Source of the DNA: Octopus bimaculoides
Lineage: Eukaryota
Assembly: GCF_001194135.2 (NCBI RefSeq)
Contig: NC_068987.1
Coordinates: forward strand, 47,426,802 to 47,490,801
Reading direction: 5' to 3'
Length of the DNA: 64,000 nt
Part shown: positions 3,261-57,830 of the stretch, in pieces
Layout: each line of letters starts with the position of its first letter
Position numbering within the stretch: position 1 is the stretch's first letter
Program-made: the position numbers and the translations under genes
The notes under the pieces: generated by a model
Told to the model about the DNA's origin: nothing
Seen by the model: the letters and a program-made list of their open reading frames with translations, nothing else
Database searches by the model: none

Positions 3261-3744
3261 AGCATTAAAAAAAAAATGCAAAGTAAAATCAGATAAGAGT
3301 TGAAAAAGTAACAGCATTACTTGATGACTAATCTATATTTGCATTTGCAAGTATGAGTTTTAAGTATAAGATATCTTTTCACCTTCTTAACATGTATGAG
3401 TATTTTCTTTGATTTTATAGCTGACATAATCTTTAAGGTAGCATGTTAGTACTATCCTTAAGGTTGCATATATCTGTGTGTGTGTGTAAAATCTTTATTC
3501 TTATCTATTTAGATGTGTGTATATCTTTCACATGTATATGTATTTCTCTTTGAGAAAGTGTAGTGTGATCTTGCATAAATCAAATTATTTTAATTTATAT
3601 ATCATCATGCTGGCATGAGATGGATGGTTTGACAGGAGCTGGTAAGGTCGGGAGTCACACCAGGTTCCATTGTCTGTTTTGGCATGGTTTCTTCAGCTGG
3701 ATAGCCTTCCTAATGTCATCAACTTTACAGAGTGTAGTGGGTGT

Positions 3745-4265
3745 TTTTTACATGGCACCAGCATCAGTGCTTTTTTATGTGGGGCCAGCATCACTGCTTT
3801 TTGCATGTCACCAGCACCACTGTTTTCTATGTGGCACCAGAAATGGTGCTTTTTACATGGCACCAGCACCAGTGCTTTTTATGTGCGACCAGCACCAATG
3901 CTTTTCATGTGTCACCAACACTGGTACTTTTTACGTGACACTAGTACCGGTGCCTTTTATGTGTCGCTATTATCACTGCTTTTTGTGTGACACTAAAATT
4001 GGTGTTTTTTAGGTGACAACAGTACAGGTGCTTTTCACGTGGCACCAGCACCAGTATTTTCACGTGGCCCCAGTACCCGTGCTTTTCACGTGGCACCAGC
4101 ACCAGTACTTTTCATGTGGCACTAGCATCGGTACTTTTTGTGTGGCACCAGCACCGGTACTTTTCATGTGGCTGGCCCCAGTACCGGTGTTTTTCGCGTG
4201 GCACCAGCACCAGTGCTTTTCACGTGGCACCAACATCAGTGCTTTTCATGTAGCACCAGCACTGA
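3745..4265. repeat. GC-rich minisatellite, about 26-27 bp unit (ttttcacgtggcaccagcaccagtgc), roughly 20 degenerate units
   Basis: Direct reading of the tandem units; lies within an antisense RTE-type 3' end that begins at about 3603 (CAT tail). Confidence 0.85.
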
Positions 4266-4269
4266 TAGG

Positions 4270-5352
4270 GTCATCAAAAAAATATATAACAGTTTCCATC
4301 ACATGCCAGTGGGGAAAACCAGAAGTAGTTGATAGCTTCCGTTACCTAGGTGACAAAGTCAGTAACGGAGGTGGATGCTCTGAGAGCGTAACTGCTAGAA
4401 TAAGAATAGCCTGGCAAAGTTCAGAGAGCTCGTACCTCTGCTGGTAACAAAGGGCCTCTTGCTCAGAGTAAAAGGTAGACTGTATGACATGTGTGCAAAC
4501 AGCCATGCTTCACAGTAGTGAAACATAGGCCGTGACTGCTGAGGACATGTGTAAGCTTGCAAAAAATGAAGCTAGTATGCTCTGCTGGATGTATAATGTC
4601 AGTATGCATACATGACAGAGTGTAAGCGCCCTGAGAAAAAAATTGGACATAAGAAGCATCAGATGAGGTGTGCAAAAGAGACAATTGAGCTGGTATGGTC
4701 ATGTGTTGCATATGGATGAGGCAGCTGTGTGAGAAAGTGTCACACCCTAGCAGTGGAGTGAATCTGTGGAAGAGGTAGATCCAAGGAGACCTGGGATGAG
4801 GTGGTGAAGCATGATCTTCAAACATTGGGCCTCGTGGAGGCCAACAAGTGACTGAGACCTTTGAGAAGACCTGGCATGCCAATTGAGACCGTAACCGTGG
4901 CCTATGCCTGTGTTGCATAACCGGCCTATTTAAGAGTACCCGTCAATCATTGGGCAATAAACTGTGCTTGCGAAGACCTGTTGAGTCAAGTGAAGTCATT
5001 GTCGTGGCTGATGCCAGTACCGCCTGACTGGCACCTGTGCTGGTGGCACATAGAAAGCACCATTTAACTGTGGTCGATGCCACTCTCACCTGACTGGCTC
5101 CTGTGCCAGTGCATTTAAAAAGTACCATTCGAGCATGGTTGATGCCAGTACCACCTGACAGGCCCTCATGCCAGTGGCACGTAAAAAGCACCCACTACAC
5201 TCTCAGAGTGGTTGGCATTAGGAAGGGCATCCAGCTGTAGAAACCTTGCCTGTTCAAATTGGAGCCTGGTGCAGCCTTCTGGCTTGCCAGTCCTCAGTTA
5301 AACTGTCCAACCTATGCCAGTATGGAAAGTGGACGTTAAACGATGATGATGA
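4270..5352 (+). mobile_element. 5'-truncated RTE-clade LINE (post-RT domain + 3' UTR + (GAT)n tail)
   Basis: EVVDSFRYLGD...CSESVTARIRIAW, GRGRPxxTW-like remnants with stops; ends GTTAAACGATGATGATGAT. Confidence 0.85.
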
Positions 5353-9397: not shown

Positions 9398-10036
9398 GGC
9401 ACTATCATGCTATTAGCTGTCAGAAGTGAAAGTGCTCACTGCTAGTGAAGTATCTGTCTGTCTGCCTGCATGCCTGTTGCTGGCCTGTCGATTCTTTGGC
9501 TACTGACAGCTAATACCATGACTGGCCGGAGCGAGCTATATGTCTGTCTGTCTGTCTCTCTCTCTATCTATCTATCTATTACNNNNNNNNNNNNNNNNNN
9601 NNNNNNNNNNNNNNNNNNNNNNNNNNNNNNNNNNNNNNNNNNNNNNNNNNNNNNNNNNNNNNNNNNNNNNNNNNNNNNNNNNNNNNNNNNNNNNNNNNNC
9701 AAACTTCATTTGTTTTCTATTTTGATAAATTCTCTCTGTTGAAAATTATATTTTTATATTTTAAATAATTTGCAATTTCAGGAAATATGTTTTTATATTA
9801 AATTTGTGTTTTCTACTCACGACTAGCTAGCGCGGACGCGCGAACTTTCGAGTGATAGATAGATCGAGAGACAGACAGACAGACAGACATATAGCTCGCT
9901 CCGGCCAGTCATGGTATTAGCTGTCAGTAGCCAAAGAATCGACAGGCCAGCAACAGGCATGCAGGCAGACAGACAGATACTTCACTAGCAGGCAGTGAGC
10001 ACTTTCACTTCTGACAGCTAATAGCATGATAGTGCC
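9398..10036. repeat. Near-perfect inverted repeat, about 180-bp arms (9398-9578 / 9854-10036), enclosing a gap
   Basis: Arms are reverse complements apart from a 4-bp indel and SSR length; each arm has an internal 18-bp inverted repeat (9406-9423 / 9503-9520). Confidence 0.85.
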
Positions 10037-10169
10037 AGAATTTGCGTTTTACTTGTGTCTGCCTTAAATAATTGTAAATAATAATTTTATGTAAATTAAA
10101 TTTATTTCACTTGAAATTCTATAAGTTTCAACAGCGATTTAGCACCGACATCTAGTAAGGCCAAGCTAA

Positions 10170-10212
10170 TCCAGACTGATGAAGGGCAACTACCCTGGAA
10201 CTAGTCTTTGGA
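10170..10212 (+). ncRNA. Minimal type I hammerhead ribozyme motif, core variant GGAA instead of GAAA
   Basis: tccaga-CTGATGA-aggg(caacta)ccct-GGAA-ctag-TC-tttgga: stem I 6 bp, stem II 4 bp, palindromic stem III ACTAGT, GUC site. Confidence 0.6.
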
Positions 10213-10568
10213 CGCTGGCTTTGTTGGTTTGGAGGTGCTTATCTCCCCTGTTTGAAAACTTAAGGACTCAGAACGCTTGTGTCACGTAGCCAACTGGAAA
10301 CAGTGTTTCTTGGGGCTAAATAGTAGCATTCTTCCCTTTCCTGGGACTACCACATTAAGTTGGCTGGCAATAAATCATCACTTTATCGTGCTGCTACTAT
10401 ATAACTCTCTCTGAGAGATTTAGAAATGCAATATTTCTAACTTTAAATATACACCATTTTATGAGAAACAAACATTAATAACTTTAGTTTAATAAGGGGC
10501 TCAAATTCCACTCCGTCCCCAATTTTAAATTTCGAACTTTTTCACCCATTTATTTATCTGTCTATCTT

Positions 10569-10783
10569 ATTTCTTTATTGCCCACAAGGGGCTAAACATA
10601 GAGGGGACAAACAAAGGGATTAAGTCGATTACATCGACCCCAGTGCGTAACTGGTACTTAATTTATCGACCCTAAAAGGAGGAAAGGCAAAGTCGACCTC
10701 GGCGGAATTTAAACTCGGAACGTAACGGCAGACGAGATACCTCTAAGCATTTCGCCCGGTGCGCTAACGTTTCTGCCAGCTCG
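10569..10783 (-). mobile_element. tRNA-derived SINE, CpG-intact, near-identical to 1797-2015
   Basis: Direct sequence match to the 1.8-kb copy. Confidence 0.8.
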
Positions 10784-10827
10784 TATCTGTCCGTTTATTC
10801 ATAAGATATATTTGTCAACTAAATGTG

Positions 10828-11150
10828 GCGGTCCTGTAGAAGACGGTGTTATTGTTGTTTTTAGCCCCAGGAAGACATTCATATCTATCTATTTCTTTAT
10901 ACACACATTTATATGCTTATTGAATTTAAAATTTTGGAAACGTGGTTTTTTGCATATTCGGAATCTTCATCTAAAATATAGGGAAAAAAGATTTCGATAA
11001 AGTTCAAAATTTTCGGGCGGGGGAGGTTAATTATTATTATTTTTTTTTTTGCATATTCGTAATCTCCGACATCTAAAACGTAGGAACCCGAAAATATTTT
11101 TTTCAAAAAATGCATTTTTAAATGAGAGGTGCGAGACTGCTTTAGCTCCC
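10828..11150 (-). mobile_element. Non-autonomous repeat (MITE-like), uninterrupted copy; inverted sister at 13452-13704 + 15165-15245
   Basis: Reverse-complement match of TACGTTTTAGATGTCGGAGATTAC..., TATATGCTTATTGAATT and CCCAGGAAGACATTCATATCTA; a partial third copy at about 9210-9300. Confidence 0.7.
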
Positions 11151-11389
11151 CCCCTCCCATTATAAAAAAAAGCGATAAGCTGGTAATCAACTAGGTGTAA
11201 TTAAACTTAGTGGCGTAAATTTTTTGTAGCATGTCATTTCTATGTAGTAGCTTCCGTTTTGTCCCGGAGGTCATCCTTCGACAACTTTATCGGCGGAGTT
11301 CTTATCCTTTCTACTTCCCTAATGTTGCTAAACATTGCAATTTAATAGCAATACATAAATCTCCTGGATATTTCCCGCTACGAAGATGG

Positions 11390-11740
11390 TGAACTGGTAG
11401 AATTCTTAAGACATCGGGCAAAATGTTTAGCAGCATTTTGTCCGTCTCACGTTCTGAGCTCAAATTGTGCCGAAGTTGATAAAATAAGCACCAGTTGAGC
11501 ACTGGAGTCGATGTAATCAAGTTAGCACTTCCCGAAATTGCTGGCTTTTTTAAAATTTGAGACTAATATTTCTCGCTACAAGACTGAACTATTAGCACGT
11601 CGGAAAAAAATACCTTGGTATATTTGTTCCGGCCTGTTACATTCTGAGTTTAAATCCTGCTGAGATTAACTTCGTCTTTCATTCCTATTAGATCAATAAA
11701 GTAAAGTACCAGTCGAATACTGAAGTCGATATAATTGACA
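11390..11740 (+). mobile_element. Two diverged SINE copies that retain CpGs
   Basis: GACATCGGGCAAAATG...GTCGATGTAATC and GCACGTCGG...GTCGAATACTGAAGTCGAT. Confidence 0.6.
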
Positions 11741-13807
11741 ATGGCTCATTCACCCAAATCTCACTATGAAAACAACCTGACAATTACAGAACAGTATCTT
11801 GTTAAAAACAATATTACATCTAAAGCTATTTCCGGTGTTCTGCTTTATTAATTCCCTTTAATCATTGTCAACTACCTTTGAGTTACCACTATCCATAACA
11901 TAGTAAGAATACTATGAAATATGCATATCCTTGTTGTTACTCGATGTAAATATTGGGGGGAAATCTCCAGAAGTAGAACAAATCTGATAACTGACCATGT
12001 AAGTTGAACCTTCTTTTCTTTAACTATCAATATTAAATTAGTTATAACGATGATGGTAGTTTGTAATTACTTTAAAATAGCTTAGTGCCCGTAAAATGCT
12101 TAGTGCTTAACTAGAGTAAGTTATTAACCCATATGGACTACTGAGCACATTTTATGAAAATGTGACTACCATGCATATATAAAAAAGAAGTTAAAATATC
12201 TGGCAAATTTTACATCATCTGAAAAGTCATTAGTTGAACTATTAGTCCTCTTGCATTCTGAGGAGTATCGGAGCGTTTGGGTGACATTAGACCCTAACAA
12301 ACGCAACATAAATCAAATGCATCTATCTGGGCTACAATCGTGGCCTATCGATCGACCTGTGCCTATCGATCGACCCGTCACGCTTTATTTGTTAACTGGC
12401 TTACAAATTACAAAATAATATTAGCTACTGGCAGATTTTGTTTCTTCTTCGCTGCATAATTATTTTGGCGAAGGTAAATAATACGCACACTAGGAGGTTA
12501 AGGTTACGCTGAAAACGGGTGGTATATGTGTATTCTTTACCTCAGCCATTATTTTCCCTTTAATACTTAAAATAGCTTAGTGACACACAATGGATATATA
12601 CACCTAATAGGCATTTTGTGACATTCGTTCGTTATACCGCGCACAGTTCTGAAAAATTCCTTCAAATAGGACCAAAAGAATGCTGATTTCAGAAAAGCGG
12701 ATATTTTTTAATTAAATTTTCTACAAATACCTTTCAGATAGTATAGATTCCTGCACAATCTGAAAGGTATTTGTGTTAAATCTCACTAATAAAATATCAA
12801 GGGGATGTAATTCTATATTTACGTGCATGTATGTATGTTATGCATACGCATATAAACACACACATACACAAAAATACATAACCAAGCGATTCAGCTGAGG
12901 AAAAAAAAAAAATTACGGTAATTGCCGAACAAATAATTTCACTTTTAATAAACTTTCTGCAGCGAGGTTTGGGTTTCGTATATTACATATTTTCCTACAC
13001 ACATACAGAACAAAAGCCTTGCAAGCTTTTAGTTTGTTATTTGTACACATGCAAAATGAAAGCAGTCGTGATGTGACATGGTTGCAGAGAAGTATACGTA
13101 ACTTTTTCTTTTTCACATTTCCGGGATCTTTTTGGTTAATATTGACACATGTAGTTGTTGCCAATTTCAGAGCCACAATTTTTTTTGAGAAAGAAATTAG
13201 ATAATTTCTCAAAAAAAAAAAAAAAAAAAAAAAAGACGGTTCGAACTTTTAAAGATTGAAATTTTTAGTTGTAATTTTAACCAATCAATTCATTTTCGGC
13301 GATCGCACTTGCCATGTTATTGGTATGTATTCCCATAGCAGCCTGTTGATAGCATCATGGATCAGGGTTTGCCTGCATCGCAGAATTTCATCGTAATTTT
13401 TTTAATATATGTGCTTCTAAAGCTTTATAATGTTATCATTATGGTCAATATTTGGGGCTAATGCAGTTTCGCATCTCTCCTTGAAAAATGCATTTTTTTG
13501 AAAAAAATTTTCGGATCCCTACGTTTTAGATGTCGGAGATTACGGATATACAAACAAACAAAAAAATGTTAACCCCTCCCCCATTTAAAATTTTGAACTT
13601 TTGCGAAATATTTTCCCATATGTTTTAGATGACGAAGATTCCAAATATGCAAGAGACTACGTTTTCAAAATTTTTAATTCAATAAGCATATAGATATGTA
13701 TATAGGGCTTTCCTTAAGTAGGTTATCTCCCTTGGCTAGGCGGCGCTCCATGTAGATAATTAAACTTCCGGAGGCTAACCCACGCCATTGTTATTGTTTT
13801 ACGTCTT

Positions 13808-13926
13808 ATGGATATAAAGCAGCTTGATGATTCAGCTATCGAAGTACTTACTGTGCCTGAGTTAAAGAAATATTTAAGATTATATGGACAGTATGTTACT
13901 GGAAGAAAGGCGGACTTGATTGAAAG
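13808..13926 (+). pseudogene. SAP-domain exon of the transposon ORF (MDIKQLDDSAIEVLTVPELKKYLRLYGQYVTGRKADLIER)
   Basis: LTVxELKxxLxxxGxxxTGxKADLIER is the SAP consensus; donor AG|GTATAA at 13927 (read-through stops at 13960, 50 aa, below the ORF-track cutoff). Confidence 0.8.
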
Positions 13927-14872
13927 GTATAAAAATTCTGTCGATATGTCAACAAAGTAAATTCATCGGACGATACTTCAGACAGGAATAAGCAGAAGCG
14001 GCATAACTACAGGGTTTTATGCCGCTTCGGCATAACTACAGGGTTTTACCCCCCAGACTTTGGGAGGTCATAACTTTCAGAAAAATGAATATTTTTTAAT
14101 GAAATTTTCTATGCATATAGTATTTACTATGTAGAATCCGAATATAGAAAAATTTCCGGTGAAAGTGTTTTGGANNNNNNNNNNNNNNNNNNNNNNNNNN
14201 NNNNNNNNNNNNNNNNNNNNNNNNNNNNNNNNNNNNNNNNNNNNNNNNNNNNNNNNNNNNNNNNNNNNNNNNNNNNNNNNNNNNNNNNNNNNNNNNNNNN
14301 NNNNNNNNNNNNNNNNNNNNNNNNNNNNNNNNNNNNNNNNNNNNNNNNNNNNNNNNNNNNNNNNNNNNNNNNNNNNNNNNNNNNNNNNNNNNNNNNNNNN
14401 NNNNNNNNNNNNNNNNNNNNNNNNNNNNNNNNNNNNNNNNNNNNNNNNNNNNNNNNNNNNNNNNNNNNNNNNNNNNNNNNNNNNNNNNNNNNNNNNNNNN
14501 NNNNNNNNNNNNNNNNNNNNNNNNNNNNNNNNNNNNNNNNNNNNNNNNNNNNNNNNNNNNNNNNNNNNNNNNNNNNNNNNNNNNNNNNNNNNNNNNNNNN
14601 NNNNNNNNNNNNNNNNNNNNNNNNNNNNNNNNNNNNNNNNNNNNNNNNNNNNNNNNNNNNNNNNNNNNNNNNNNNNNNNNNNNNNNNNNNNNNNNNNNNN
14701 NNNNNNNNNNNNNNNNNNNNNNNNNNNNNNNNNNNNNNNNNNNNNNNNNNNNNNNNNNNNNNNNNNNNNNNNNNNNNNNNNNNNNNNNNNNNNNNNNNNN
14801 NNNNNNNNNNNNNNNNNNNNNNNNNNNNNNNNNNNNNNNNNNNNNNNNNNNNNNNNNNNNNNNNNNNNNNNG

Positions 14873-15087
14873 AAAGCAAAGCAACAGTTAAGGAGTGGCA
14901 TATTTTACCACGACAGACACGTACACAGCATCGAATACTACGATGTGAGTGAAAGCTGCTCTCACTGTATTGTCCGGTGTCTGGTAATCCCTTCGATACC
15001 GACATCAAACCCAAAAAAGAATCCTGACCACAGAGTGTGGGTAATTATGTCACTGGCAATGTGCATTCAGCTGATTGCAACTGTTAA
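14873..15087 (+). pseudogene. SWIM-like zinc-finger remnant of the same ORF
   Basis: KAKQQLRSGIFYHDRHVHSIEYYDV...HCIVRCLVIPS...DHRVWVIM, then frameshifted VTGNVHSADCNC*, which resembles the first half (GxVxxAxCxC) of a SWIM finger. Confidence 0.6.
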
Positions 15088-16453
15088 AGCAAGTCACTGA
15101 GCATGCGTACATGTCATACGGGAGAGTTCCAATCAGGGGTGGATAACACCTTATAGGAAAACCCTATAAAGAGGTAGATATGAATGTCTTCCTGGGACTA
15201 AAAACAACAGTAACATCGCATTTATGGTTTTCATAAGACTGCGTACGGAAAGCAAAAACAGCGGTTTCTGTAATGTCACCAGAAAGCCGGTGGGGGGTTA
15301 AGAATGAAGGAATATGATTGGTTAAAATTACAATTTTAATCTTCACAGGTTTGTAACTTTAATTTCTCCCCAAAATAGTTGTAATTTTGCTAATTGATAT
15401 GCAAATTTACATCTGTATAGAAATGTTCAGCGTTGTTTGGTTTTATGCTTCAGAAAGTGAAACTACTGAAGACGGCAAAGATCGTCTTTTGCCGGAAACT
15501 CGGCATTAAAAAGGAAGTGAAAGAATTTTCTTAGAAATGAAATAAACCTGATACAAATTTGATGTAACAAAATGATAATAATAGACTAGAAGACTGTCAA
15601 AGATATTCAACTGCTAATCAACAACACTAAGTTCTACAAGGAACTTTATGAAACGCATTGGTTCATTACAGCCACACCACTGAATTATGAATTAATCCCA
15701 AAGATCCAAGAGAGTTAATTATACTTTCAATGTTCATATTAATTCAGATATCCTGTACGTTATAATTCCTCTCAGTCAATTCATGAGTCCAACAAGAGTG
15801 TGTTGAAAAAGATTTTATTTTACAGCTGGATGCAATTCTTGGCACCATTCTCCAGCTGTTTCCAAGTGAGATGATAATCCCCACATCTATCAAATGACTT
15901 GCTTGTGTTGAGAACTAGAAACAAATGACACCGAAGTGTGCTTTTTGTTTAGGAAGATCATGCTACTTGTTGAGATGTGTTATAAACCTGAGCATATTTT
16001 CATTGTGCGCTGCAAGCAACCTACAAGTGATAAAAGGAAATATGAAACCATACACAAACACTCATTACGGGTTTCTTTCAGTTTCTCTACCAAATCTATT
16101 CCCAAGATTTTAATCAGCCCAGAGCTGGAGTAGAAGTTCCTTGCTCATGCAGTGGGACTGGAACTGAAACCCTGTCAATGGGAAGTGAACTTCTTAACAA
16201 CATAGCTGCGCTTGTCTTGTAACAGGGCCAGCCATTTCTTCTACACATGCATTGTTTTAATACAAACTTCAATTTGAAGAAGAAAATAACAAAAAGTAGT
16301 TCAGTTTCATTGATTACTTTTATTTTATTATGCCAGTCTCTCCTGACTTCAGTAAATTCACTTTCTGGATCATAGAATGAAACATCAAATCAAAAAATAT
16401 CTCATTTCAAATTTTGAAAATTAATTTGAGTAAGTTTTTTTTGCACAATTGTA

Positions 16454-17691
16454 TTAGGTTGTTCTGAAAATAATGGCCAATTTCAGAAACATTTTATTTT
16501 GGAAAAATTAACAAGAGAAATGTTTTGATTAGTCAAAGTATGAGCCGTGAGCATCTATGCCATCGATCAACAAGATTATTTATAAGATGATAAAAGCTTA
16601 TTAGCTTTGATGCAAAGAAATCTTTGAAAGCTGATTCCACCTTTGGTTTGGACCTGAAAGTTTTATCATTTAAAAACTGGTAGTCAGTGGATTGAAAGAT
16701 CAAGAGAATATGGAGGATGTGATAAAGTCTCGTATCCCAAGTCTGTGAGTTTCTGCAGTGTCATTCTTGCAACATGTGGCTTTGCATTATTGTGGAGCAG
16801 AATTGAGCCACTCCCATTCACCAATGCAGGTCTCATTTTTTGCAAGTGAGCATGCATTTCAACGAGTTCATTGCAGTAAACCTCTGCTGTAATGCTCTTA
16901 TTGGCTCCAGAAAGCTGTAATGGACAACACCAATTGCAGACCACCAGACAGTCACCATAATCTTTTGGTGATGCAACTTTGACTTGTGGAAATGTCTGGG
17001 GGACTCATGATCAAGCCATTGACCTGATCATTTACGGTCATCATAAAGGATCCATCATAAGTGACTATTCTGTCAAGAAAAGGATCATTGGTCTTTTGCA
17101 GAAAGAGCATCAAGCGCACTTCAAAACACCAAACTTTTTGACTTTCATTGAGCTCATGTGCTACCCATTTATTGAGCTTTTTCACCTTACCAATCTTCTG
17201 CAGATTGCGTGAGACCATTGCAATACCGACACCAAATGCCTGAGACATTTCTCTAACACTTGACATGGGTTTTGTTCAACCATTGCTTTCAATTGTTCAT
17301 TGTCAAGACTGCATGACCATCCTCTACCTTCTTCATCTTCAAGGCTCTCGTCACCAATATGGAATTTCTGAAACCACTTTTGTACTGTGCGATCACTTGT
17401 GAACCTCTCTCCCAGTGCTCTGTTGATATTGGCAGCAGTTTGGGAGGCATTGTGCCCAAGCTTGAACTCATGCAAGAAAAGTAAGCGAAGGTCCTTTTTT
17501 GTCATGTTCATAATTAAGGGCGCTTATGCTTCACGAATGTTTTCTATCTGAAATAAGTAGAAAATTATTAAAGAGCATACATCAATTATTAAGTATGTTG
17601 AAATTCACCTAAAATATAATTAAAATACTATGATAAAATTGCATTTCAAAACACAACACTTAGAGCAGCCATTATTTTCAGAACAACCTAA
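16454..17691 (-). mobile_element. Full-length decayed mariner (Hsmar1/cecropia-like), 1238 bp
   Basis: TIRs TTAGGTTGTTCTGAAAATAATGGC at both ends with TA duplications (16452-53, 17692-93); transposase remnants HEFKLGHNAS, WVAHELNE, FLDRIVT, NAKPHVA, PYSLDLS. Confidence 0.92.
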
Positions 17692-19227
17692 TAATAATCG
17701 TTTTTTTTTCATATAAGCCAAAAAATAGCACAACTATACAAATAAGTACTTCTCAGAAATTTTTACCCCATGCCACACTTTAATTTTGCAGAAAACAAAG
17801 TGCACTTACCATGAACAAAGTATATATCATCATCTTTTATTTTTATTTCTAATGAAGCTAAAAGCAAGTTTCTCTAAAATTATATTTCTGTATCATTCAC
17901 TGCATTCACCTCTATCCATCTCCTTTTGCACATCTGCAAACTTACCTACCCACTTATCTTGTCCAATCACTTGTACTACTTTTCTTATAGTCACCCTCCT
18001 AAGACTAGGGAGTACAACCTGATACCTCTTCACCACCTTCTCTCATTTTAATCTTGGGTAACTATGTATCTCCTCTGCAGCAAAACACCTATTCCTTGCC
18101 CTCTATCATACTTTAACCTCTCATTAGCTTGCATAAAGCCGCCTCCTTCAATACTATATCACACTCAGTTGAGGAGTCTTGTCTTGTATGTTACTAGATG
18201 ACTTCACTAGTGCCAGTATCTTGTAAAAAGCTGTCAGTACACTCTGTAAAGTGGTTAGTATTAGGAAGGGCATCAAGCCATAGAAACCATGCCAGACAGT
18301 GGTACTTGCTATAGTCCTCTGTACTGCCAGCTGCTGTTGAACTATCCAACCTATGCCAGCATGGAAAACATGTTAAATGGTGATGATAATGATCTTTTAA
18401 CATCCTTTATCTATTCTGGCATGCATGGGATGTTTTGACAGGATCCAGTGGATTGAAGGACTGGATGTCCTTTCTAATGCCAACCATTTTACAACATACT
18501 GGGTACTTTTGTTATGGTACCATCACTAGTGCAGCTATCATGTAGCTTGCAAGACTAAGCTCCCCTTTGACTGAGTGGGGCTACAGTTGAGAAGGATATG
18601 GCTTTATACTTGGAAATAGGATTTAAAAAAATAACAGAACAGGATTCTTACTGTTGAAGAAGTACATGGCTACTCACATAGAAAAGTGAACGGGAAGTTT
18701 TAATTAAAAGTTTATTGCAAGATTTATTAATTTTTACTTAGACCCCATTCTGAAGTCCCACATTCCACCAAAATATTGCCATGCTCTACTTTGAGGAACA
18801 GGTCTTAAAATAAATTTAAATACTTTCTCACTAGTCACCCACAGTCTGCCTCTTCTGTTTGTTGTAAAACTTCAAAACTTAGTTTGTAGAATCTTTTTGT
18901 AGTAAGGATTCTCTGGTGTTCCATAGTGAAATCATGTCAAGTGGGAGAGGGGAGTAAGGCTTTGTTAAATAGATTTAAATTTTATAAGAATGGAGTTTCT
19001 AATTTTGTTGTACTCCCAATTTCTGACTATTATTTGTGCTTGTTTATTTCCACTTCAGAGTAATTGGTGTATATCTCCTTTGAACTAGCCAAGCAGTTGC
19101 TGTGATCATTTGAAAACCATACCATTTTGGACGTCTTGAGGAAGTAGTCTTAATTGTTTTGACTTTAAGTTTGGGAGATTTTCAGTTTCTCCCTTCATCA
19201 TAAAATCTCTTGACCAGATAATCAGCA

Positions 19228-20155
19228 ATGTGGTTTGTTTCTTTCTTAATTTTCCACTTCTTCTTGCAACAAGGTGTATGCATCAACCCATTGTGTTATA
19301 TAATGGACTGCTGTGATCAGGACATTATTTTGAATTCACAACAGTTAAGAACTGACCTTAAAAGTATGCTTCATGGTCAACATTTAGCATGGGGAGCAAT
19401 TGCTAATCATATCATTTCCCACTTTTTGGAGCAGACACCCAGGAAAGCTTTAGTACTGTCATTTCATGGAGAGACTGGGACAGGTAAAAATTATGCAAGT
19501 GAAATCGTAGTTAAAAATTTGTACCGTTCTGGGATAAAAAGTAATTTTGTGCATATTTATCATGCAGCAGTACATTTCCCTCATGTGTCCATGTCTCAGA
19601 TTTACATTGAAAAGTTAAAGCATGAAATTAAAAATGCTGTTTATTTCTGTCCAAGGGCTGTTTTTATTTTTGATGAGTTTCATTTAATGCCACCAAAAAT
19701 TATTGACATTCTTCAAGTCTACTTAGATTTCCATGCTGAAGTGGATGGCATCGACTTCCGTAAAGCTGTATTTATATTTATNNNNNNNNNNNNNNNNNNN
19801 NNNNNNNNNNNNNNNNNNNNNNNNNNNNNNNNNNNNNNNNNNTGATATCAAATTACGAGACTTAGAATTCAGTATTGCACATACTTCACTCACTCAAAAG
19901 GGAGGTTTTTATGGTAGTGATCTAATTAAAAGTCATCTAGTGACTGCCTATATTCCATTTCTACCCTTACAGCGCACACATGTAAAACAATGCATCAATG
20001 ATGAAATGCAACGACGTAATCCTCACAAGATCTACAATGAAGAATTTATGGACAAAGTATTAATAGAATTACATTTTGTAAACGGTTTTTCAGAGACTGG
20101 CTGTAAACGTGTTTTTGAAAAAGTGGCTTTTGCTCTCATTAATGAAGATCTCTGA
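19228..20155 (+). CDS. TOR1-like: Torsin-family AAA+ ATPase (Torsin-1-like), single coding exon, spans a 61-N gap (19782-19842)
   Basis: Hydrophobic N-terminus; CxxxxCC; HGQHLA; Walker A SFHGETGTGKNY; Walker B FIFDE; DFRKAVFIF; DIKLRDLE; YIPFLPL; sensor-II GCK. The frame offset across the gap fits a mis-sized gap covering the roughly 20-24 aa expected there. Confidence 0.93.
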
Positions 20156-20390
20156 CGTTGATGGCTATTGCTCTATTCTCTATTTTTACCACTGAAGACA
20201 TATGAGAATATTTTACTGTTATAAGTCATTATCCTCAGCTTATGTTCCAAAGCAGACATCTCTCAACTGAATTCACTTCGTTGGAAAATCAATTTCACCA
20301 TCGACAATGCTGTTATTTGTATTAAAGTACTTTTTTTTTAAAGGTGTCGTGTTGTGCATCTTCTTTGACTTTTGTTCATGTGTATATATA

Positions 20391-21247
20391 CAAGGTATAG
20401 TCAAAAAGTATCTGACCTTTGGTGAAAAAACAAGTAATATTAAAAAAACTCACCATTTTGATTTAGTTTCCTTCAAAGTATTTGCCTTGGGAGTCTACAC
20501 ACTTCTGCTAGCATTCCTGCCACTGCTGGAAGCATTTCTGGAAATTACTTTTTGGGATGCTGTAGAGCTGTGCCATTGAATTTTGCTTAATGTCCTCTGT
20601 TGACACAAATCTCTCTCTCAGTGATTTCTTGAGCTTTGGGAATAACCAAAAGTCACATGGAGTAGGAGGCCTGACGAACAAGTGGTGTGTTTTGCTTGAG
20701 GAGGAACACTTAGATGGTGTGGGCAGAATGAGTGGGTGTGTTGTCATGGTGGGTTGCCAGTTCTTTGCTCCACACAGGTCAGGTCGTTTTCATAGATGGT
20801 CTTCATAGACTATTCCTTGAACCTTTGCAATCATTTCATCGTTTCTGCTAGTTGATGGTCTGCCACAATGTGGCTCACTGTCCACTGAGGTGCAGCTGTC
20901 TTTGAATCAGTTGTACAACTCCTTTATTTGTGTTTTTCCCATAGCAATCATCTCCGAAGGCCTTCTGAATCTTCTCGATAGTCTGGGCTTGCATATCACC
21001 AAGTTTTTGGCAGAATTTGATACAGTATTTTTGCCCAATGTGCTCTGTCATCTTGACTTAAAAGGAAAAGTCACACAGCACACTCTTCACGTCTGTACTC
21101 AATGTGTCACTGCAGGCAAATGGCACAACCTACAGACAAATATTTTTGCATATGCTCTGGCCTCCTAATACCCATGCAGATTTTGCTCACGCATTATTAT
21201 TTTGTGCAAAAAAGAATCAATGTCGGATACTTTTTGACTACACCTGG
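20391..21247 (-). mobile_element. Internally deleted mariner (irritans-like), 857 bp
   Basis: TIRs CxAGGTRTAGTCAAAAAGTATCYGAC at both ends; PCDFWLFPKLK...FQKCFQQWQEC remnant. Confidence 0.85.
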
Positions 21248-21284
21248 TGTGTGTGTGTGTGTATTTCTTTTACTCTTTTACTTG

Positions 21285-21632
21285 CTTCAGACTGTGACCA
21301 TGCTGGAGCACCACCTTTAGTCGAGCAAATCGACCCCAGGACTTATTCTATTGGTCACTTTTGCTGAACTACTAAGTTACAGAGATGTAAACACACCAGC
21401 ATTGGTTGTCAAGCAATGTTGGGGGGACAAACACAGACACACAAACATATACACACACATACATATATATACATATATACGATGGTTTTTTTTTTAATTT
21501 TCCGTCTACCAAATCCACTCACAAGGCTTTGGTTGGCCCAAGGCTATAGTAGAAGACACTTGCCCAAGGTGCCACACAGTGGGACTGAACCTGGAACCAT
21601 GTGGTTCATAAGCAAGCTACTTACCACACAGC
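21285..21632 (-). mobile_element. SINE with internal (CA/TA)n tract
   Basis: Minus strand GTGGTAAGTAGCTTGCTT...GGTTCAGTCCCACTGTGTGGCACCTTGGGCAAGTGTCTTCTACTATAGCC; further copies at about 37280-37630, 38150-38310, 39640-39775, 40940-41100, 41620-41760, 44720-44880, 58490-58590. Confidence 0.75.
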
Positions 21633-21689
21633 CATGATGCATTTATCTCCTGCAAGAATATTTAAACAATTTCCAATCCTTTCTAAAGG

Positions 21690-22118
21690 CATAAGACCTG
21701 AAACTTTGGTGGAGGGTATTAGTCGATCATATCGACCCTAGTATTTTACTGGTTCTTACTTTATTGACCTCGAAAGGATAAAAGGCAAAGTTGACCTTGG
21801 TGGAAATTGAATTCAGAATGTAAACAAGAACAAAATGTCACTAGGCATTTTGCATACCATGCTAACGATTCTGCCAGCTTTCTGTCCTAATAATAATTGT
21901 AATCCTTTCTCCTATAGGCACAAGGTCTAAAATTTTGGTGGGGGGATTAAGTCAATTACATCAACCTCAGTGCATAAATGGTACTTAATTCATTGACCCC
22001 CAAAAGAATGAAAGGCAAAGTCAACCTCAGCAAAATTTGAACTCAGAACGTAAGGACAGATGGAATGCTGCTAAGTATTTTACCCAGCGTGCTATCAATT
22101 CTGCCAGCTTGCTGCCCT
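21690..22118 (-). mobile_element. Two tandem CpG-depleted copies of the 1797-type SINE
   Basis: GTCAATTACATCAACCTC, AAAGGCAAAGTCAACCTCAGC (CpG to TpG/CpA relative to the 1797 copy). Confidence 0.75.
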
Positions 22119-25100
22119 AATGATATAAATAATAATGATAGACAAAAATTACAGCTGACTGTGTTTGATCACACTATGGACAACATGACTATACCTAGCA
22201 ATGTTTTATGTCATTGTGGGCTAACATGCTTGTGACTGATCCTGTTTGGTGTATTGATTAGGTTATAAGTTAATTTGTGATTTATAACTTGATTATACCT
22301 TTTATGAGGGAGATTTGTGTTGATATTGTCTCTAACTGCACAGCACACATAATTGTGAATCTTGGTCTTGTGATTTACATAAACACATCATTCTCATCTT
22401 TCTAGCTACTCCTACTACCCTTATATATTGTGAGATAGCTATATATCTTCTCTATAGCAAGACCTCTATCACACTTTAGTGTCTCAATTCCTAGTGTAAA
22501 TCTACCTGGACCCTACTCAGTTGAGGGGTTTTCTTTGTCATGTGAGTTACTTAGTGGCATCACTACTGCCAGTGTCATATAAAAAGCACCCACTACACTA
22601 TGAAAAGGATTGGTTTTTAAGAAAAGTTATCCAGCCATAGAAACATTGCTAAAGCAGACATTCTGTCAAATTATCTATGTCAACATGGAAGATGGACGTT
22701 AAATGATTATGGTGAGGAAACTTTTGATGGTACATAGATATATCTCATGTCAAAACCAAAATAAACTCACTCATATTTGGCCATTGTAATCAGGAACGAG
22801 CCACAGAATAAGGTTAATGTTTCCAGCCTGATATATTTAACACATCAGGTTAGAAACATACCTTTACCTTCTTTTCACAACCAGAAATTTCCACATTTTT
22901 CCTTTCTTATTTCTAATGTTTGTATCAAATTGAGTCTCTCTGAATTCTAGTGATTATCATTTAATTACTTATTGTTATCCACTAGTCTGCCTGTCCTCAC
23001 TTTACTGGGTAAACATACACTTTTAATTTTATTTTTTCTTCAGCTCTCATTAAAGGCCTCCTAAAACAAATGAAAAGCTGTAATGTTCTGTATGTGTATA
23101 TAAATATATTTTTCTATATAATAGCCAATATGTTGGGTGGTTGGTTTATTTCATCAGTCTTGCTTTACTTTGTATAAAGAGTAAAAGAGAATTAATGTAA
23201 GTGGTGGAGGATGAGTGCACATACTATGCTTGGTGAAAAGCCATAAGTAAAGGGATACTCTACACACACACAGTAAGAGAGAAATAATCATAGAAACTGA
23301 AGAGGTGGAGAGGAAATTAAGAACAGAGTATTTATGGGAGGTGTTCAAATTTTACAGAGATAAGTTTTTGCTGGAGTAGATTGTGATTATGTTGATAAAA
23401 TGTAGAAAAATATATATTTATTTTAAATATACAAATGAATAGTTTGTTTTATTTCATTTTATTTTCAGGTAACAAATATTTTTCTTTTGAAAATTAGTAT
23501 TCATTTAATTATTTTGTATAATCGCCTAAGAAATTTGATATAAGTTAAATTTCAATTATTATATTTATGCTATATTTCCTGATATTACCCATAGTGGTAA
23601 AAGTATGCTTCCAAAGATATATCATTCAGAATTGTGTATAAAGCTATATATATATAATTTCTAGAAGTTTTCTGACAGATACCCCAACAGACCTGTGGCA
23701 GATGAAGCCCTTCAGTTCTTTATCTCCTCATCTAACAGATAGTAAACTTCATACAAATTCTGCATCCTGATATCTATCAGGTTTGTGGCATTTGTTGCAT
23801 CAGACCAATACAAGTTTCAGGGATGAGAAGTGGGACTGGCTCTGCACAAACCATGCCCACTATAATAATATTCACTTTACAGGTTGTTCATCAAGCCAAA
23901 ATACCAGCACTAACTCCGTCACACTTTCTTCTGTACCAAAGGAGTACAAATAGAGGATGCTGCTGGAAGTCTTCAGCATTGGCCCTGCAGACAGCCATAG
24001 GGTGGCAAGAGAGTCCAGAAAAATGTAATTCTATGTATATAATTCAGCATTGATCCTATATCATCATCTAACATCTGCATTATATGCTGGCATACATGCA
24101 TGCATTTTTATAGTTGTTTTATATGGTCATGTTACTGTTGTGTTGTTATTGTATTATGTTAAATTACATATTATTGTATGCTATTACCATTTAAATATAT
24201 ATTGTTTTTATTTGTCTACTTGAACTACTATCTACCTTTCAATGTATTAGTATACAGCAGCAGATTGAATTGTTAGGTGTCTGTAGCTACTGACAAAATA
24301 AAAAAAGGAATAGCTTGTGAAGGTATGATAAAGAGATACTTCTACTGTTGTGTGATAGTAATATATGGGTATTACCCTTTTAATACCAATCCACCTTAAA
24401 GCCTTCCATCAAAAATTCATGTTAGCTTATTTTCCAAACACCATCTTATTAATGGCAAAGTTATTACTAAATTCTTCATTATTTTCAAAATTAAATTAAA
24501 TAAAGTTTGTGTATTTCATTAGTAATATGGTTTCAAAAGAGTTAAATGTGAAAGACTGGCAAAAGCCGGAGGGAAATGGGTTGGGTTATAATCCATTAGA
24601 GGCACCTGCATGAAAGGCAGACAACAGGTAAGTTAAGAGGGTGATTGGGTATTAAAGACTTCAGCTGATGGATGATGCAGGAGATAGTTGTGCTGTATTG
24701 GAAAAAATTTGTGGAAGGATCAGTTGTTCAAATGTACTTTTATACAAGAGATATTGGAAACCTGAGACAAGTGGGAATATACTATGAAATTGACACGTCT
24801 TTTTGTCCCAGCATTAAAAAAAAAAAAAGATATTGTTCATAAGTTCTTTTAAAGCTTATAAATACTTCTGACTGACCTACTTACTTTAATGAGTGAACCC
24901 TGATAATTCTTTTAGGTGAGCAATGCTGTAGATATTGTTGGGTTTTTCCTCCCCCTCTTCAAGCTGTGACCCCACTTCAGTCTATGTTTTCCCTTTTCTT
25001 CATGTTCATCTGTGTACACACACCCACATCATGTTTGGAAGCACTCTTATTCACATCTATATACAGGTATACGCACATAAACACGAACACCACCACTAGT

Positions 25101-31329: not shown

Positions 31330-32590
31330 AAACCATATAGAAACCTGTTGATTGGATTGTACCTGTAATTCCAAGAGGTACTGGCATGTTTCTCGCATGC
31401 TGATTCTGCCTTAGAATTACATTAAGTGTAGGCATGTCTTTGGAATAATATTTGACTGACCAAATTCCAGCCCAAAGTCCTTCCATGTCTTAACCTTGGA
31501 TCCCTTTACCATCTGTGCTGCAACTTTTCATGTCTGCTTGTATTGCAAGCGCAAAGAGAACTTATTTCCAAACCAAGCTTTGTAAGCCCCCTTCTTTGCT
31601 CAGATGGCATCTTCAACCTCTTGAGTGAATCAAGGGGTCCTCCTGCCACCCAGCACCGTACTGATTTGCTTTTCCCAGCAGTTTTCAACTGTTGAAGCAG
31701 AAACTGCCAAACTGAACGGTCTCTACTCCCTTTCAACATCCTTAGTTTCTTCAAAGAGTTATCTGAATTTGGATGCAATTGTATCTGCATACCTGGTCCT
31801 GACTTCTTTATCAACCAGTGCTTCCCACTTTATCCTGTTGATCAAACCAGTTTTGTGGGTCTTCCTGGTTTGGGACTATCTCAGGTTGCAGACAACTAGA
31901 TAGTGATCAGTTGGCAGCTCAGCTTCTCTCTTAACATGATCATCCAGCACAGAACCAGAGAGATCAAAGATGATAAAATCATTTACTGATCTCTGTCCAT
32001 AATTTCCTTTATACCATGCGTATTTATGGATGTCTTTGTGCTGGAAGAAGATGTTCATATAGAGAGCCTCTTACTAGAACAAATTTGATAAGGCCTCTCC
32101 ATTTGTATTTAGGTAGGGATCACCATTCCTTCCAGTTACTCCTTTCCATGTCAGGTCATTGGTATTAACATGTGCATTCAAGTCTCTCATTAGGTTATAT
32201 GGCTCAATCTTAACTGCATCTAACGCTGCAGTGACTTCATCAAAGAAGAATCTGCATTCGGACTCTCTGTTTGCTGCATAAACTTGTACCCACAGAGGCC
32301 TATCTGTCAGCCTAAACTTCCAGAAGCAAATCCCTCTTCTCAATATGATGCAGTCCATAATACATTCTGACAGCCAGGGACTTGTGAGTATCCTCACTCC
32401 AACCTGTGTAGTCATTCCTGACACCATAGCTGAATAGTGGAGTTTCCATCCTCCATCGAAATCTACAATACCAGGACCACAGAACTTTGCTGAGGAAACC
32501 CCCAACTATATGTAGCTGGTAACATCTGACCTCCTGCAACAGTTCCCTGCCTCTTATCTGTAAAGGTTTTGACATTCCAGTTACCAACTG
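31330..32590 (-). mobile_element. RTE-clade LINE 5' half (AP endonuclease + linker), inverted
   Basis: ELLQEVRCYQLHIVG, GGWKLHYS, QVYAAN, DLNAHV, WKGVTGRNGD, NDFII, TDHYLVVCNL. Confidence 0.8.
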
Positions 32591-37840: not shown

Positions 37841-38621
37841 GTTGGTGTAAAAGTTTTATTTCAATTGTTTCTTAGGTAGGTGTTGACTATTGTTGGGTGG
37901 CAGAGTAGCTGTGCATGCATGTGTGTCATCGTCATTGTTTTAACATTCACTTATTAGTGAACATGGGTCAGACAGAATTTATTCAGGTAGATTTTCTATG
38001 ACTGGAGGCCTTTCTTGTCATTAACCCTCATATGTTTCAAAGCAAAGTAATATTTCCCCGAGACCTGACATGTTTTCATGGGAGATTGAAAATGAAGGAC
38101 AGAGAGAGATAGTAACACACTCACTCAGACATGCATATATTCATAAATACACACACACACACTTTAGGTTTTTAATTTCCATTGATCAGATCCATTCATA
38201 TGACTTGGCTTGGCCCAGGGCTATAGTAGAAGACACTTGCCCAAGGTGCCACAATGTAGGACTGAACCCAAAGCCATGTGGTTGGAAGAAAACTTTTTAA
38301 GCACTTAGCCACACCTGCATGTATGTAGTTTATTGTGAGGCTTTGTGTGTGTATAGAGGTGACTGCTATATAGTGGAAATGTCTATGCTTGAGAGGTTCT
38401 AAGAGTGTATGTGTATGTGTGTGTGCATGCATATTTGTATGCACACAAGTATAGTTCTATGGAGGTGGCATGGTATATCTGGATAGTTTTGTGAGTTTAT
38501 ATGTTTTGTGAGTTTATATATGTTTATATGTAGTGTATATTGTTATATGAGTTTATATGTAGATATGTCAGAATGTACTGAACTGGTTTCCTCCTATTTT
38601 ATTATTTTTGGTCAATTGCAG

Positions 38622-38831
38622 GCAACTGTAGCTGCATTTGCTGCCAGTGAGGGACATGCCCACCCTCGTGTTGTAGAACTGCCTAAAACTGAAGATGGTC
38701 TTGGTTTCAATGTGATGGGAGGAAAGGAGCAGAACTCTCCTATATACATATCCCGAATTATTCCTGATGGTGTGGCAGCAAGAGAAGGTGGCCTTAAACG
38801 TGGTGACCAACTGATATCAGTCAATGGAGAG
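38622..38831 (+). CDS. LIN7: LIN7 exon 4 ([70 protein letters not shown]), PDZ domain
   Basis: Acceptor ttgcag at 38621, donor GAG|GTAAGT at 38832; 210 nt, phase 0-0; GLGF loop and [14 protein letters not shown] are LIN7-specific. Confidence 0.97.
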
Positions 38832-55459: not shown

Positions 55460-55466
55460 AAGTGCG

Positions 55467-55503
<37 letters not shown>

Positions 55504-56813
55504 TTTATGTATACACACTCACAAACACACACACACATGCACACACACATGCACACACACACATTCACATATGTTCACACACATACACATTCACACACAC
55601 ACACATGACACTCACACACACACACATCACACACACACTCATGTAAACTATATATATATATATATATATATATNNNNNNNNNNNNNNNNNNNNNNNNNNN
55701 NNNNNNNNNNNNNNNNNNNNNNNNNNNNNNNNNNNNNNNNNNNNNNNNNNNNNNNNNNNNNNNNNNNNNNNNNNNNNNNNNNNNNNNNNNNNNNNNNNNN
55801 NNNNNNNNNNNNNNNNNNNNNNNNNNNNNNNNNNNNNNNNNNNNNNNNNNNNNNNNNNNNNNNNNNNNNNNNNNNNNNNNNNNNNNNNNNNNNNNNNNNN
55901 NNNNNNNNNNNNNNNNNNNNNNNNNNNTATACATGTACATCTATACAAACATATACACACATACACACATATGTATATATATGTATGTTTACATATATAA
56001 CTATGTATATATGTGTATATATATATGTATGTATATACATGTATATATATGTATATGTATGTATATGTATATGTGTGTATATATAAATATATATATATAT
56101 GTGTGTGTGTGTGTATAAATACAGACATACATTTTATATTATATATTATACACATTAACATATCTATATATTTATATATCTATCTATATACAGACACACA
56201 TATATACATACATGTATACATAAATGCGCACATGCACACACACTCACACACACACACTCACACACACACACATACACATGCACACATGCATGCCCATACA
56301 CAAATGCATGTTAATGTATATACATATGTGTGACTGAATATGTGTGAGCATACATTTATGTATATGTGTGTGTGTGTGTGTGCATTCTGTTTTTTTTTCT
56401 CTCCTTGTTATTGCACATTACTCTTCTAAACAGATTTCAAATATTGGTGATAGAAAACTTTGTACAAACTATTAAACCTAAATACATACATGTGTGCACA
56501 TTTACACACACGTTCACACTTATACATGCACACATACATATGTGCATGCATAAGTGCACATATATCTTTTTATAATCTTTAGGTTTATTAATTTGTACAA
56601 AGTTTTCAATCAATAATATTTAAAATCTGTTTAGAAAAGTCATGTACAAGTGCTGTAACAAGGAGAGAAAAAAACATAAATGTTCTTACACACACACACA
56701 CACACACACAAAGACATCTAGTTCTGTGTATATACACACATAAACATGCGTTTTTGTGAATGTGTATGTGTGTGTGTGCGTGCATGTGCATATACACACT
56801 GAGAGGATAATAC

Positions 56814-56851
<38 letters not shown>

Positions 56852-57104: not shown

Positions 57105-57148
<44 letters not shown>

Positions 57149-57798: not shown

Positions 57799-57830
<32 letters not shown>

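Follow-up and report, generated by a model that had tools for sequence, protein, structure and literature searches.

The ISL2EU group, DNA transposons of the PHIS or PIF/Harbinger-like superfamily, is characterized by a 2-bp AT target site duplication (TSD), a transposase with THAP, HTH and DDE domains, a YqaJ protein and terminal inverted repeats (TIRs) that usually start with GG (PMC4482050; PMC4122938; PMC9179366). In PIF/Harbinger elements a 3-bp TWA sequence is duplicated and the second ORF is of the Myb/SANT type (PMC4482050). The sister clade of ISL2EU by transposase phylogeny, Spy, occurs in invertebrates and has a palindromic AT-rich target (PMC4122938). Spy elements are inserted at AAATTT without duplication and possess a single ORF. 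Zisupton elements produce an 8-bp TSD and encode a large transposase that itself carries SWIM/SAP modules, and Kolobok elements are normally flanked by a TTAA TSD, a 4-bp palindromic target.

The locus described here lies in a 64-kb stretch of Octopus bimaculoides DNA, referred to below as the window. From sequence comparisons, the unit at 13705-15164 was assigned, with a probability of about 0.85, to the ISL2EU group as a DNA transposon copy that is non-autonomous, carries an internal deletion and has decayed further. The assignment was based on protein and TIR homology to the elements of other molluscs, because neither an O. bimaculoides transposase gene nor a second complete copy was retrieved. 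The unit was bounded by imperfect TIRs of ~24 bp (GGGCTTTCCT-TAAGTAGGTTAT-C paired with GGGTTTTCCTATAAG-GTGTTATCC) and by TATA at each side. The left and right junctions read TATA-GGGCTTTCCT... and ...AGGAAAACCC-TATA, respectively, exactly as in the original prediction. When the flanks were joined with one TATA, they aligned to the minus strand of a sister repeat in the same window with 83% identity over 312 columns (E 3e-76). The alignment ran through the insertion point and was gap-free on its left side, hence the empty site proposed earlier was recovered. Together, the imperfect TIRs, the TATA flanks and the empty site supported the insertion of a TIR-bounded DNA transposon. A degenerate terminus pattern was found in the 64 kb at both ends of the unit and at one unrelated position with two mismatches, and no additional copies or termini were detected in the window. 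Tandem Repeats Finder reported no repeat in the 13400-15500 region. The features of the locus are listed in Table 1.

Table 1. Features of the transposon copy, its insertion host and the paralogous empty site (positions are those of the window).
Feature	Position	Strand	Remarks
Uninterrupted sister of the host repeat (paralogous empty site)	10844-11150	-	Single TATA at 10898-10901
Older interspersed repeat, left half (insertion host)	13451-13700		83% identity to the sister at 10844-11150, minus strand
Left TATA	13701-13704		Register favoured from relatives: 13701, target T; 13702-13703, duplicated AT; 13704, first element base A
Left TIR (GGGCTTTCCTTAAGTAGGTTATC)	13705-13727	+	Core CTTTCC..TAAG..GTTATC common to bivalve elements
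Start of the accessory gene: ATG and SAP (MDIKQLDDSAIEVLTVPELKKYLRLYGQYVTGRKADLIER..)	13808-13933	+	Pfam SAP, E 2e-8; 95% amino acid identity to the O. bimaculoides paralogue P0002
Linker remnant VNKVNSSDD..TSDRNKQK	13948-13998	+	Other frame; 21-bp deletion relative to paralogues; from tblastn of P0002
Foreign sequence running into the gap; probable nested piece of a different octopus repeat	13999-14174		No match to L001 or to paralogue proteins
Assembly gap	14175-14871		~700 bp; length only an estimate
Pre-SWIM region (KAKQQLRSGIFYHDRHVH...DHRVWVIMS, then VTGNVHSADCNC past a frameshift near 15049)	14872-15084	+	Ends at the first Cys-x-Cys of the SWIM-like motif; stop at 15085-15087
Internal deletion junction	15083-15084		Homology to the full-length gene ends at 15083; paralogues P0012 and P0005 read through the same junction
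3'-terminal 81 bp including the right TIR (~15140-15164, ...GGATAACACCTTATAGGAAAACCC)	15084-15164	+	
Right TATA	15165-15168		Favoured register: 15165, last element base T; 15166-15167, duplicated AT; 15168, target A
Interrupted older repeat, right half	15169-15240		

The coding remnants were found to cover the initial third of an accessory gene, with the SAP domain and the region as far as the Cys-x-Cys that opens a SWIM-like motif. The translation starting at 13808 matched Pfam SAP PF02037 with 34.1 bits (cut-off 23.9), so the domain predicted at that position was confirmed. The SWIM claim was upheld in part. The peptide GNVHSADCNC was indeed encoded at 15055-15084, directly before a stop codon, but it represented only the first half of the motif, which reads C-x-C-TAG-x-GE-x-C-N-H in the homologues, and the translations of the right arm gave no match to Pfam SWIM. 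Even in the Sinanodonta homologue the Pfam SWIM match was below the threshold (E 0.003, 17.5 bits, cut-off 19.6). The peptide ACVHV (15109-15123) was considered as the SWIM motif's second half, displaced by a frameshift, and was rejected, as the gene homology ended at 15083 and the paralogues shared the same junction. Since the homology to the full-length gene ended there, the copy lacked the remainder of the SWIM motif, the YqaJ nuclease domain and the entire transposase gene. The earlier view of the unit as a deletion derivative was thus supported. The reading frame was broken across the unit in the order +2, +1, gap, +2, +1. The accessory frame was lost past 13933, and the open frame continued to a stop at 13958-13960.

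The join across the assembly gap was examined by aligning both arms to a related 1990-bp contig (L001), which began at the homologous left end. Positions 4-219 of the element aligned to 5-226 of this contig and positions 1168-1379 to 446-664, with strand and order preserved. The paralogue proteins of O. bimaculoides likewise contained both sides of the gap in a single chain, therefore the join was consistent with one element. It was also considered that two different copies had been fused in the assembly, one contributing its 5' and the other its 3' part, in which case the unit and its TSD would not represent a single insertion. Such an artefact would accommodate the 176 bp of non-element sequence left of the gap and the gap length, which is an estimate only. 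However, the outer flanks were halves of one repeat that rejoined without a gap at a single TATA, and the order and orientation of the arms were correct against both the contig and the paralogue proteins. A mis-join was thus judged very improbable, and the unit was treated as one element. The non-element sequence at 13999-14174 weakly resembled other repeats (12687-12723 and 13483-13512) and contained a 21-bp direct duplication (13999-14019 and 14028-14048). The gap itself is expected to hold the remainder of this nested fragment and ~100-130 bp of the element linker (approximately L001 320-445).

The part lost from the window copy was recognized in full-length relatives. In the 1990-bp contig the gene continued as ..CNCTAG, an intron and QGEACNH.. 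into a YqaJ domain (PF09588, E 1e-19), and the continuation into YqaJ was also observed in 116 homologues. The YqaJ domain of the Sinanodonta homologue matched, besides Pfam YqaJ and Viral_alk_exo, the sequence of structure 3syy (E 6e-8), annotated "Exonuclease", and thus resembled the alkaline exonucleases of the lambda-exonuclease type. Unlike such enzymes, the transposon protein carries additional N-terminal SAP and SWIM-like modules, and in the window copy the nuclease part is deleted. In Mya (eight loci), Sinanodonta, Pecten and Mercenaria the SAP-SWIM-YqaJ gene was accompanied by a convergent gene with THAP, HTH_Tnp_4 and DDE_Tnp_4 domains, and both genes were enclosed by TIRs homologous to the octopus ends. 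The Sinanodonta transposase P0146 matched DDE_Tnp_4, HTH_Tnp_4 and THAP with E values of 1e-43, 3e-14 and 6e-7, respectively, and the Mya protein P0189 gave similar results. The TIR cores were alignable across the octopus, Sinanodonta, Pecten, Mercenaria, Mya and metagenome elements; for the metagenome elements L018, L019 and L024, the far ends were not on their contigs. The conservation of the TIR core between cephalopods and bivalves might conceivably reflect horizontal spread, a reading of low probability.

The relatives resembled the published ISL2EU elements in having two ORFs, for a THAP, HTH and DDE transposase and a DNA-binding YqaJ exonuclease protein (2015, PMC4482050; Han et al. 2014, PMC4122938), in their short TIRs with G-rich starts, in an AT-rich target with a duplicated AT dinucleotide and in their occurrence in animals, molluscs among them. 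At the window locus the ORF pieces corresponded to the N-terminal third of the YqaJ protein and GGG...CCC stood directly inside TATA, the favoured register placing one A/T pair before it. The DDE, HTH and THAP domains of the transposase were found in the full-length relatives, the window copy having no such gene. Several differences were also noted: as a deletion derivative, the window copy has no transposase, AT is bordered by T and A (target TATA) and not as in the published target A-AT-T, the TIR start is read as A-GGG rather than GG, and the SAP and SWIM-like modules of the YqaJ protein are absent from the cited ISL2EU descriptions.

The original prediction had suggested a family that could not be named, possibly undescribed, with SAP and SWIM domains known from Zisupton and with Kolobok considered for comparison. 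It had also named ISL2EU among the homes of SWIM/YqaJ proteins. An undescribed superfamily, or an element related to Zisupton or Kolobok, could account for the combination of SAP and SWIM, known from Zisupton transposases, in a copy that has no transposase of its own, and Kolobok shares the 4-bp palindromic target. However, the SAP/SWIM piece belongs to the YqaJ exonuclease accessory protein and not to a transposase, in four mollusc species TIRs homologous to those of the octopus copy enclose the gene for that protein together with one for a DDE_Tnp_4 transposase, and the TSD corresponds neither to 8 bp nor to TTAA. Zisupton was rejected because an 8-bp duplication was absent at the window site and SAP/SWIM occurred in the accessory protein; Kolobok was rejected because the flanks were TATA and the partner transposase of the relatives, of the IS5/PIF type, was DDE_Tnp_4. 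An origin of this kind is hardly credible, and the claim of a nameless family was abandoned, as the relatives displayed the published ISL2EU architecture. PIF/Harbinger sensu stricto shares with the relatives the same Pfam DDE_Tnp_4 and HTH_Tnp_4 matches and an AT-rich target; it was excluded since the flanks were not TWA direct repeats and the second ORF was SAP-SWIM-YqaJ. Spy was excluded by the TATA/WATW target, the two ORFs of the relatives and the duplication of AT in Mya.

The original prediction described a 4-bp TATA duplication. TATA was present on both sides, but four base pairs proved to be one of several readings, and the relatives favoured AT. As TATA is a palindrome, a 4-bp TSD with ends GGG...CCC and a 2-bp AT TSD with ends AGGG...CCCT are indistinguishable at the window site, which is equally compatible with both. 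In eight Mya copies with more than 99.9% identity the junctions were [A/T]AT-TGTCC...GGACA-AT[A/T], a 2-bp AT TSD with no other reading, and AT was also duplicated in a Mya tandem dimer and its flanks. The flanks were AATA/TATA in a 99.7% identical Sinanodonta copy (L012) and AATA/TATT, i.e. A AT [A...T] AT T, in the metagenome locus L023. A subfamily with ACAC ends read xAT-ACAC...GTGT-ATy, with x and y variable. Because AT alone fitted all of these relatives, the apparent 4-bp TATA duplication is most likely, from these alignments, the usual 2-bp AT duplication of the group at a TATA target.

Other registers were rejected. A 2-bp TA TSD with ends GGG...CCC predicted an empty site of 14 nt, when 12 nt were observed, and with ends TAGGG...CCCTA the predicted site was 2 nt too short. 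A 0-bp reading (ends TAGGG...CCCTA) and asymmetric 3-bp readings fitted the window, but failed on L023 and Mya or had no counterpart in the relatives. It was further considered that the molluscan sublineage with ends GGG/GCC..., although related to ISL2EU, cuts with a 4-bp stagger and duplicates TATA as a new TSD variant. Exactly one TATA is present in the empty site, and in this sublineage with G-S-S-C ends TATA was found on both sides in 6 of the 8 independent complete insertions (the window, Sinanodonta L010 and L011, Pecten, Mercenaria and the metagenome locus L037), the two exceptions being the young copy L012 and the old copy L023. The empty site, however, is explained equally well by an AT TSD with ends A...T, and both exceptions depart from TATA. 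Moreover, the duplication is unambiguously AT in the Mya elements, whose TIRs are homologous and whose transposase is 55% identical, and the first element base varies by family (T in L024 and Mya, A in others), when AT is constant. The 4-bp stagger was thus considered unlikely. It is similarly doubtful that the GGG/GCC-ended sublineage of octopus, Sinanodonta, Pecten and Mercenaria has shifted to a strict TATA target with a true 4-bp duplication; if it had, the PIF/Harbinger-ISL2EU-Spy superfamily, otherwise known only for 0-, 2- and 3-bp duplications, would gain its first 4-bp TSD. At a palindromic target such as TATA, a 2-bp duplication takes on the appearance of a 4-bp duplication, which can mislead the classification of transposable elements by TSD length.

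With the AT duplication adopted, the following history was proposed. In autonomous elements of the lineage, short TIRs enclose two genes in convergent orientation, one for the accessory protein with SAP, SWIM-like and YqaJ (lambda-exonuclease-type) modules and one for the THAP, HTH and DDE_Tnp_4 transposase. By analogy, the transposase would bind the TIRs, excise the element and insert it at an AT-rich target, where a 2-nt staggered cut would give the AT duplication. The molluscan sublineage would prefer the target T-AT-A, its element starting with A and ending with T; consequently, the junctions would read TATA-GGG...CCC-TATA and simulate a TSD of 4 bp. Apart from its two TIRs, the window copy retained only the initial third of the accessory gene, hence it could be mobilized only by proteins supplied in trans. 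The deleted form was presumably amplified in the octopus genome, and the window copy would have been inserted into an older repeat at TATA and later have acquired frameshifts and, probably, a nested repeat fragment. To the little-studied ISL2EU group, whose SAP/SWIM/YqaJ accessory nuclease may have a role in transposition, a cephalopod family and a preference for T-AT-A targets would be added.

The importance of the locus lies mainly in annotation, as at least 20 short O. bimaculoides gene models in UniRef look like fragments of an amplified non-autonomous transposon and not like host genes. No octopus-named protein was present among the best 120 homologues of the transposase, and no papers were found in the literature on ISL2EU together with Octopus. 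Compared piecewise, P0002 and P0012 were 93-97% identical to the window copy, one short linker piece excepted. Many of the paralogues stopped at ..DCNC, and P0012 and P0005 continued through the deletion junction. Among the 20 matches of the window peptides, 19 were named and all of these belonged to O. bimaculoides, with lengths of 93-278 amino acids and the labels "SAP domain-containing" or "uncharacterized"; the remaining one, P0004, came from a Logan read-set assembly.

Based on sequence comparisons, the unit was assigned to the known transposon group ISL2EU as an ordinary non-autonomous member. Its ends formed an imperfect inverted repeat of ~24 bp, and a degenerate terminus pattern matched both of them and one unrelated site over the 64 kb, with nothing further. 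The outer flanks were the two halves of one older repeat and, once rejoined through a single TATA, aligned through the junction to an uninterrupted sister copy (83% identity, E 3e-76) containing a single TATA. Hence, the TATA-bounded unit and its in-window empty site were borne out, coordinates included. The anatomy of the window copy, its internal deletion and its insertion into the repeat at a TATA site were read directly, as was the gene content of relatives, and the octopus junctions are known here from this one flanked copy.

Features in the window (hyphens within sequences mark element ends)
Feature	Position (strand)	Details
Unit	13705-15164	left TATA-GGGCTTTCCT..., right ...AGGAAAACCC-TATA
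SAP domain	13808-13933	Pfam, E 2e-8
Foreign sequence, not ISL2EU element	13999-14174	176 bp, left of the gap; resembles other octopus repeats
Assembly gap	14175-14871	
Conserved stretch	14872-15084	ends ..GNVHSADCNC, then stop
Sister copy (empty site)	10844-11150 (-)	single TATA at 10898-10901
Torsin-family ORFs	19228-20155 (+)	two ORFs, separated by gap 19782-19842
PDZ domain exon ORF	38508-38876 (+)	Pfam PDZ, E 6.6e-13
Simple sequence	55400-62700	(CA)n/(TA)n-type, three assembly gaps
Retroelement-like ORFs	3620-4918; 32074-32505	

The gap was checked for a mis-join by means of L001, a related contig of 1990 bp from a public read-set assembly, whose left end is homologous and whose 5' gene region is intact. 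Element positions 4-219 and 1168-1379 corresponded to L001 5-226 and 446-664 in identical strand and order, and O. bimaculoides paralogue proteins, e.g. P0002, carried both gap sides in one chain, ~30 residues apart. Since the arms were colinear in the paralogues and the host repeat rejoined, both sides belong to one insertion. The coding pieces lay in frames +2, +1, gap, +2, +1, so that the reading frame was broken, and the linker had a 21-bp deletion. The foreign sequence is probably a nested insertion or fragment running into the gap, with its other end inside it. It was also observed that this sequence carries a 21-bp direct duplication and weakly resembles local repeats at 12687-12723 and 13483-13512, the host repeat among them.

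The SAP domain of the original prediction was recovered by Pfam. The SWIM-like GNVHSADCNC proved to be a real start of such a motif, but the remainder was absent, a stop following the first Cys-x-Cys. Past the same point, the L001 gene read CNCTAG, an intron, QGEACNHIGALL and a YqaJ/viral alkaline exonuclease domain (PF09588, E 1e-19), and C-x-C-x-AG-x-GE-x-C-N-H was conserved in the aligned mollusc, amphioxus and cnidarian homologues as a SWIM-like motif. The Sinanodonta protein is named 'SWIM-type domain-containing' in UniProt, and its Pfam SWIM score was slightly under threshold. The window copy retains the first Cys-x-Cys only, because L001 and the homologues continue into the full motif and YqaJ. 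Homology to the full-length gene ended at 15083, the final 81 bp being the element 3' end. An identical deletion junction was read through in paralogues P0012 and P0005; therefore, the deletion is typical of an amplified non-autonomous subfamily and not of this copy alone.

Full-length proteins of 565-615 aa, combining SAP, SWIM-like and YqaJ parts, were widespread in molluscs. In Mya arenaria, a 6485-bp element occupied eight loci with copies >99.9% identical, and the SAP-SWIM-YqaJ gene was called beside a convergent THAP + HTH_Tnp_4 + DDE_Tnp_4 gene in seven of them, the eighth (L008) having the same element DNA without a gene call. The closest full-length relative (54% identity) was that of Sinanodonta woodiana, a 4562-bp element with both genes, and the same pair was present in Pecten maximus and Mercenaria mercenaria. 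A direct Pfam scan of the relatives' transposases gave DDE_Tnp_4 (E 1e-43), HTH_Tnp_4 (E 3e-14) and THAP (E 6e-7). The octopus ends shared with the TIRs of all four species' elements an aligned core, CTTTCC..TAAG..GTTATC..CCC. ISL2EU elements have been described with a THAP/HTH/DDE transposase, a YqaJ-domain protein, usually GG-initial TIRs and a 2-bp AT duplication at A-AT-T (PMC4482050; PMC4122938; PMC9179366), and this architecture equals the two-gene layout of the relatives. An undescribed family, as originally suspected, was thus not upheld, the relatives with homologous TIRs being of the published type. None of the best 120 transposase homologues carried an octopus name, and in the library searched no paper named both ISL2EU and Octopus.

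The TATA had been taken for a 4-bp duplication. It did stand on both sides of the unit and once in the empty site, but only a 2-bp AT duplication fitted every relative. Because TATA is palindromic and the base pair just inside is complementary, the filled and empty sites fit both readings equally: a 4-bp TATA duplication with GGG...CCC ends and a 2-bp AT duplication at T-AT-A with AGGG...CCCT ends both regenerate ATGTATATAAAG, as formally do 0-bp or asymmetric 3-bp readings. In the eight Mya copies, the junctions (A/T)AT-TGTCC...GGACA-AT(A/T) made a 3- or 4-bp direct repeat impossible. Two full-length Mya copies lay head to tail in CP111013.1 (L003, ~9913-22559), sharing one AT (...GGACA AT TGTCC...), which is consistent with AT duplication and expected if the second copy entered the TSD of the first. 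Five elements of an ACAC-ended subfamily (xAT-ACAC...GTGT-ATy) varied independently in their outer bases (C/T, T/C, T/T, T/T, C/A), and element base 1 was T in Mya and L024 rather than A as in the others, AT being constant and the first base family-dependent. T and A lay outside the AT in 6/8 complete independent insertions of the octopus element's sublineage; therefore, TATA is a real target preference. A genuine 4-bp duplication was considered improbable for the sublineage: Sinanodonta L012 (99.7% identical to L010) read AATA...TATA, in contradiction to a 4-bp direct repeat, and the metagenomic L023 with Pecten-type ends read AATA-GCCC...GGGC-TATT, which, parsed as A AT (A...T) AT T, matches the target published for ISL2EU. 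Judged from these junctions, the 2-bp AT duplication is the sole reading compatible with every case. The target preference, with the possible 4-bp alternative, is mildly new.

TG replaced AT at one terminus in each of two elements, the right end of Mya L006 (~16395, GGACA-TG) and the left end of L074 (~788, atg-ACACCC), where mutation, an imprecise event or truncation could be responsible. The Sinanodonta woodiana loci L011/L013 and L014/L015 had identical flanks on one chromosome, ~1.2 Mb and ~12 Mb apart, respectively; each pair is one insertion copied by segmental duplication and was counted once. L014 and L015 were truncated at element position 1319.

By family resemblance, a DDE transposase would recognise the TIRs via THAP and HTH domains, excise the element and reinsert it with a 2-nt stagger, and the window copy, without transposase and nuclease, would be mobilised in trans. 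The YqaJ nuclease domain resembles lambda-exonuclease-type enzymes by sequence (3syy, E 6e-8), and the SAP/SWIM/YqaJ protein might plausibly serve in resecting ends or in repair, at either the donor or the target site. Distant YqaJ homologues (P0086, P0089, P0091, P0119, P0131, P0134, P0135) were fusions with PHD (PF00628), PF20700 or Ulp1 protease (PF02902); therefore, the nuclease module seems to have been recruited by other element types too.

A search with the unit's translated peptides gave 20 protein matches. All 19 named ones were UniRef entries from O. bimaculoides, 93-278 aa long and labelled 'SAP domain-containing' or 'uncharacterized', and the unnamed P0004 came from a Logan read-set assembly. 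These ~20 short gene models (P0001-P0020) appear to be translated copies of this non-autonomous transposon, and such a likely TE origin is mildly new. Some were fused to unrelated exons, such as a Kazal-like domain in P0014 and a lysine-rich N-terminus in P0017.

Elsewhere in the window, the several retroelement-like ORFs were judged by eye only to resemble decayed fragments, and a Pfam scan of 32074-32505 gave no match. The long simple sequence produced many spurious Cys/Val/His/Thr/Tyr-rich ORFs. The torsin ORFs correspond to a torsin-family AAA+ protein (Pfam Torsin, E 5.5e-41; TOR1A_C, E 2e-5, slightly under cut-off), which looks like the host gene closest to the element.
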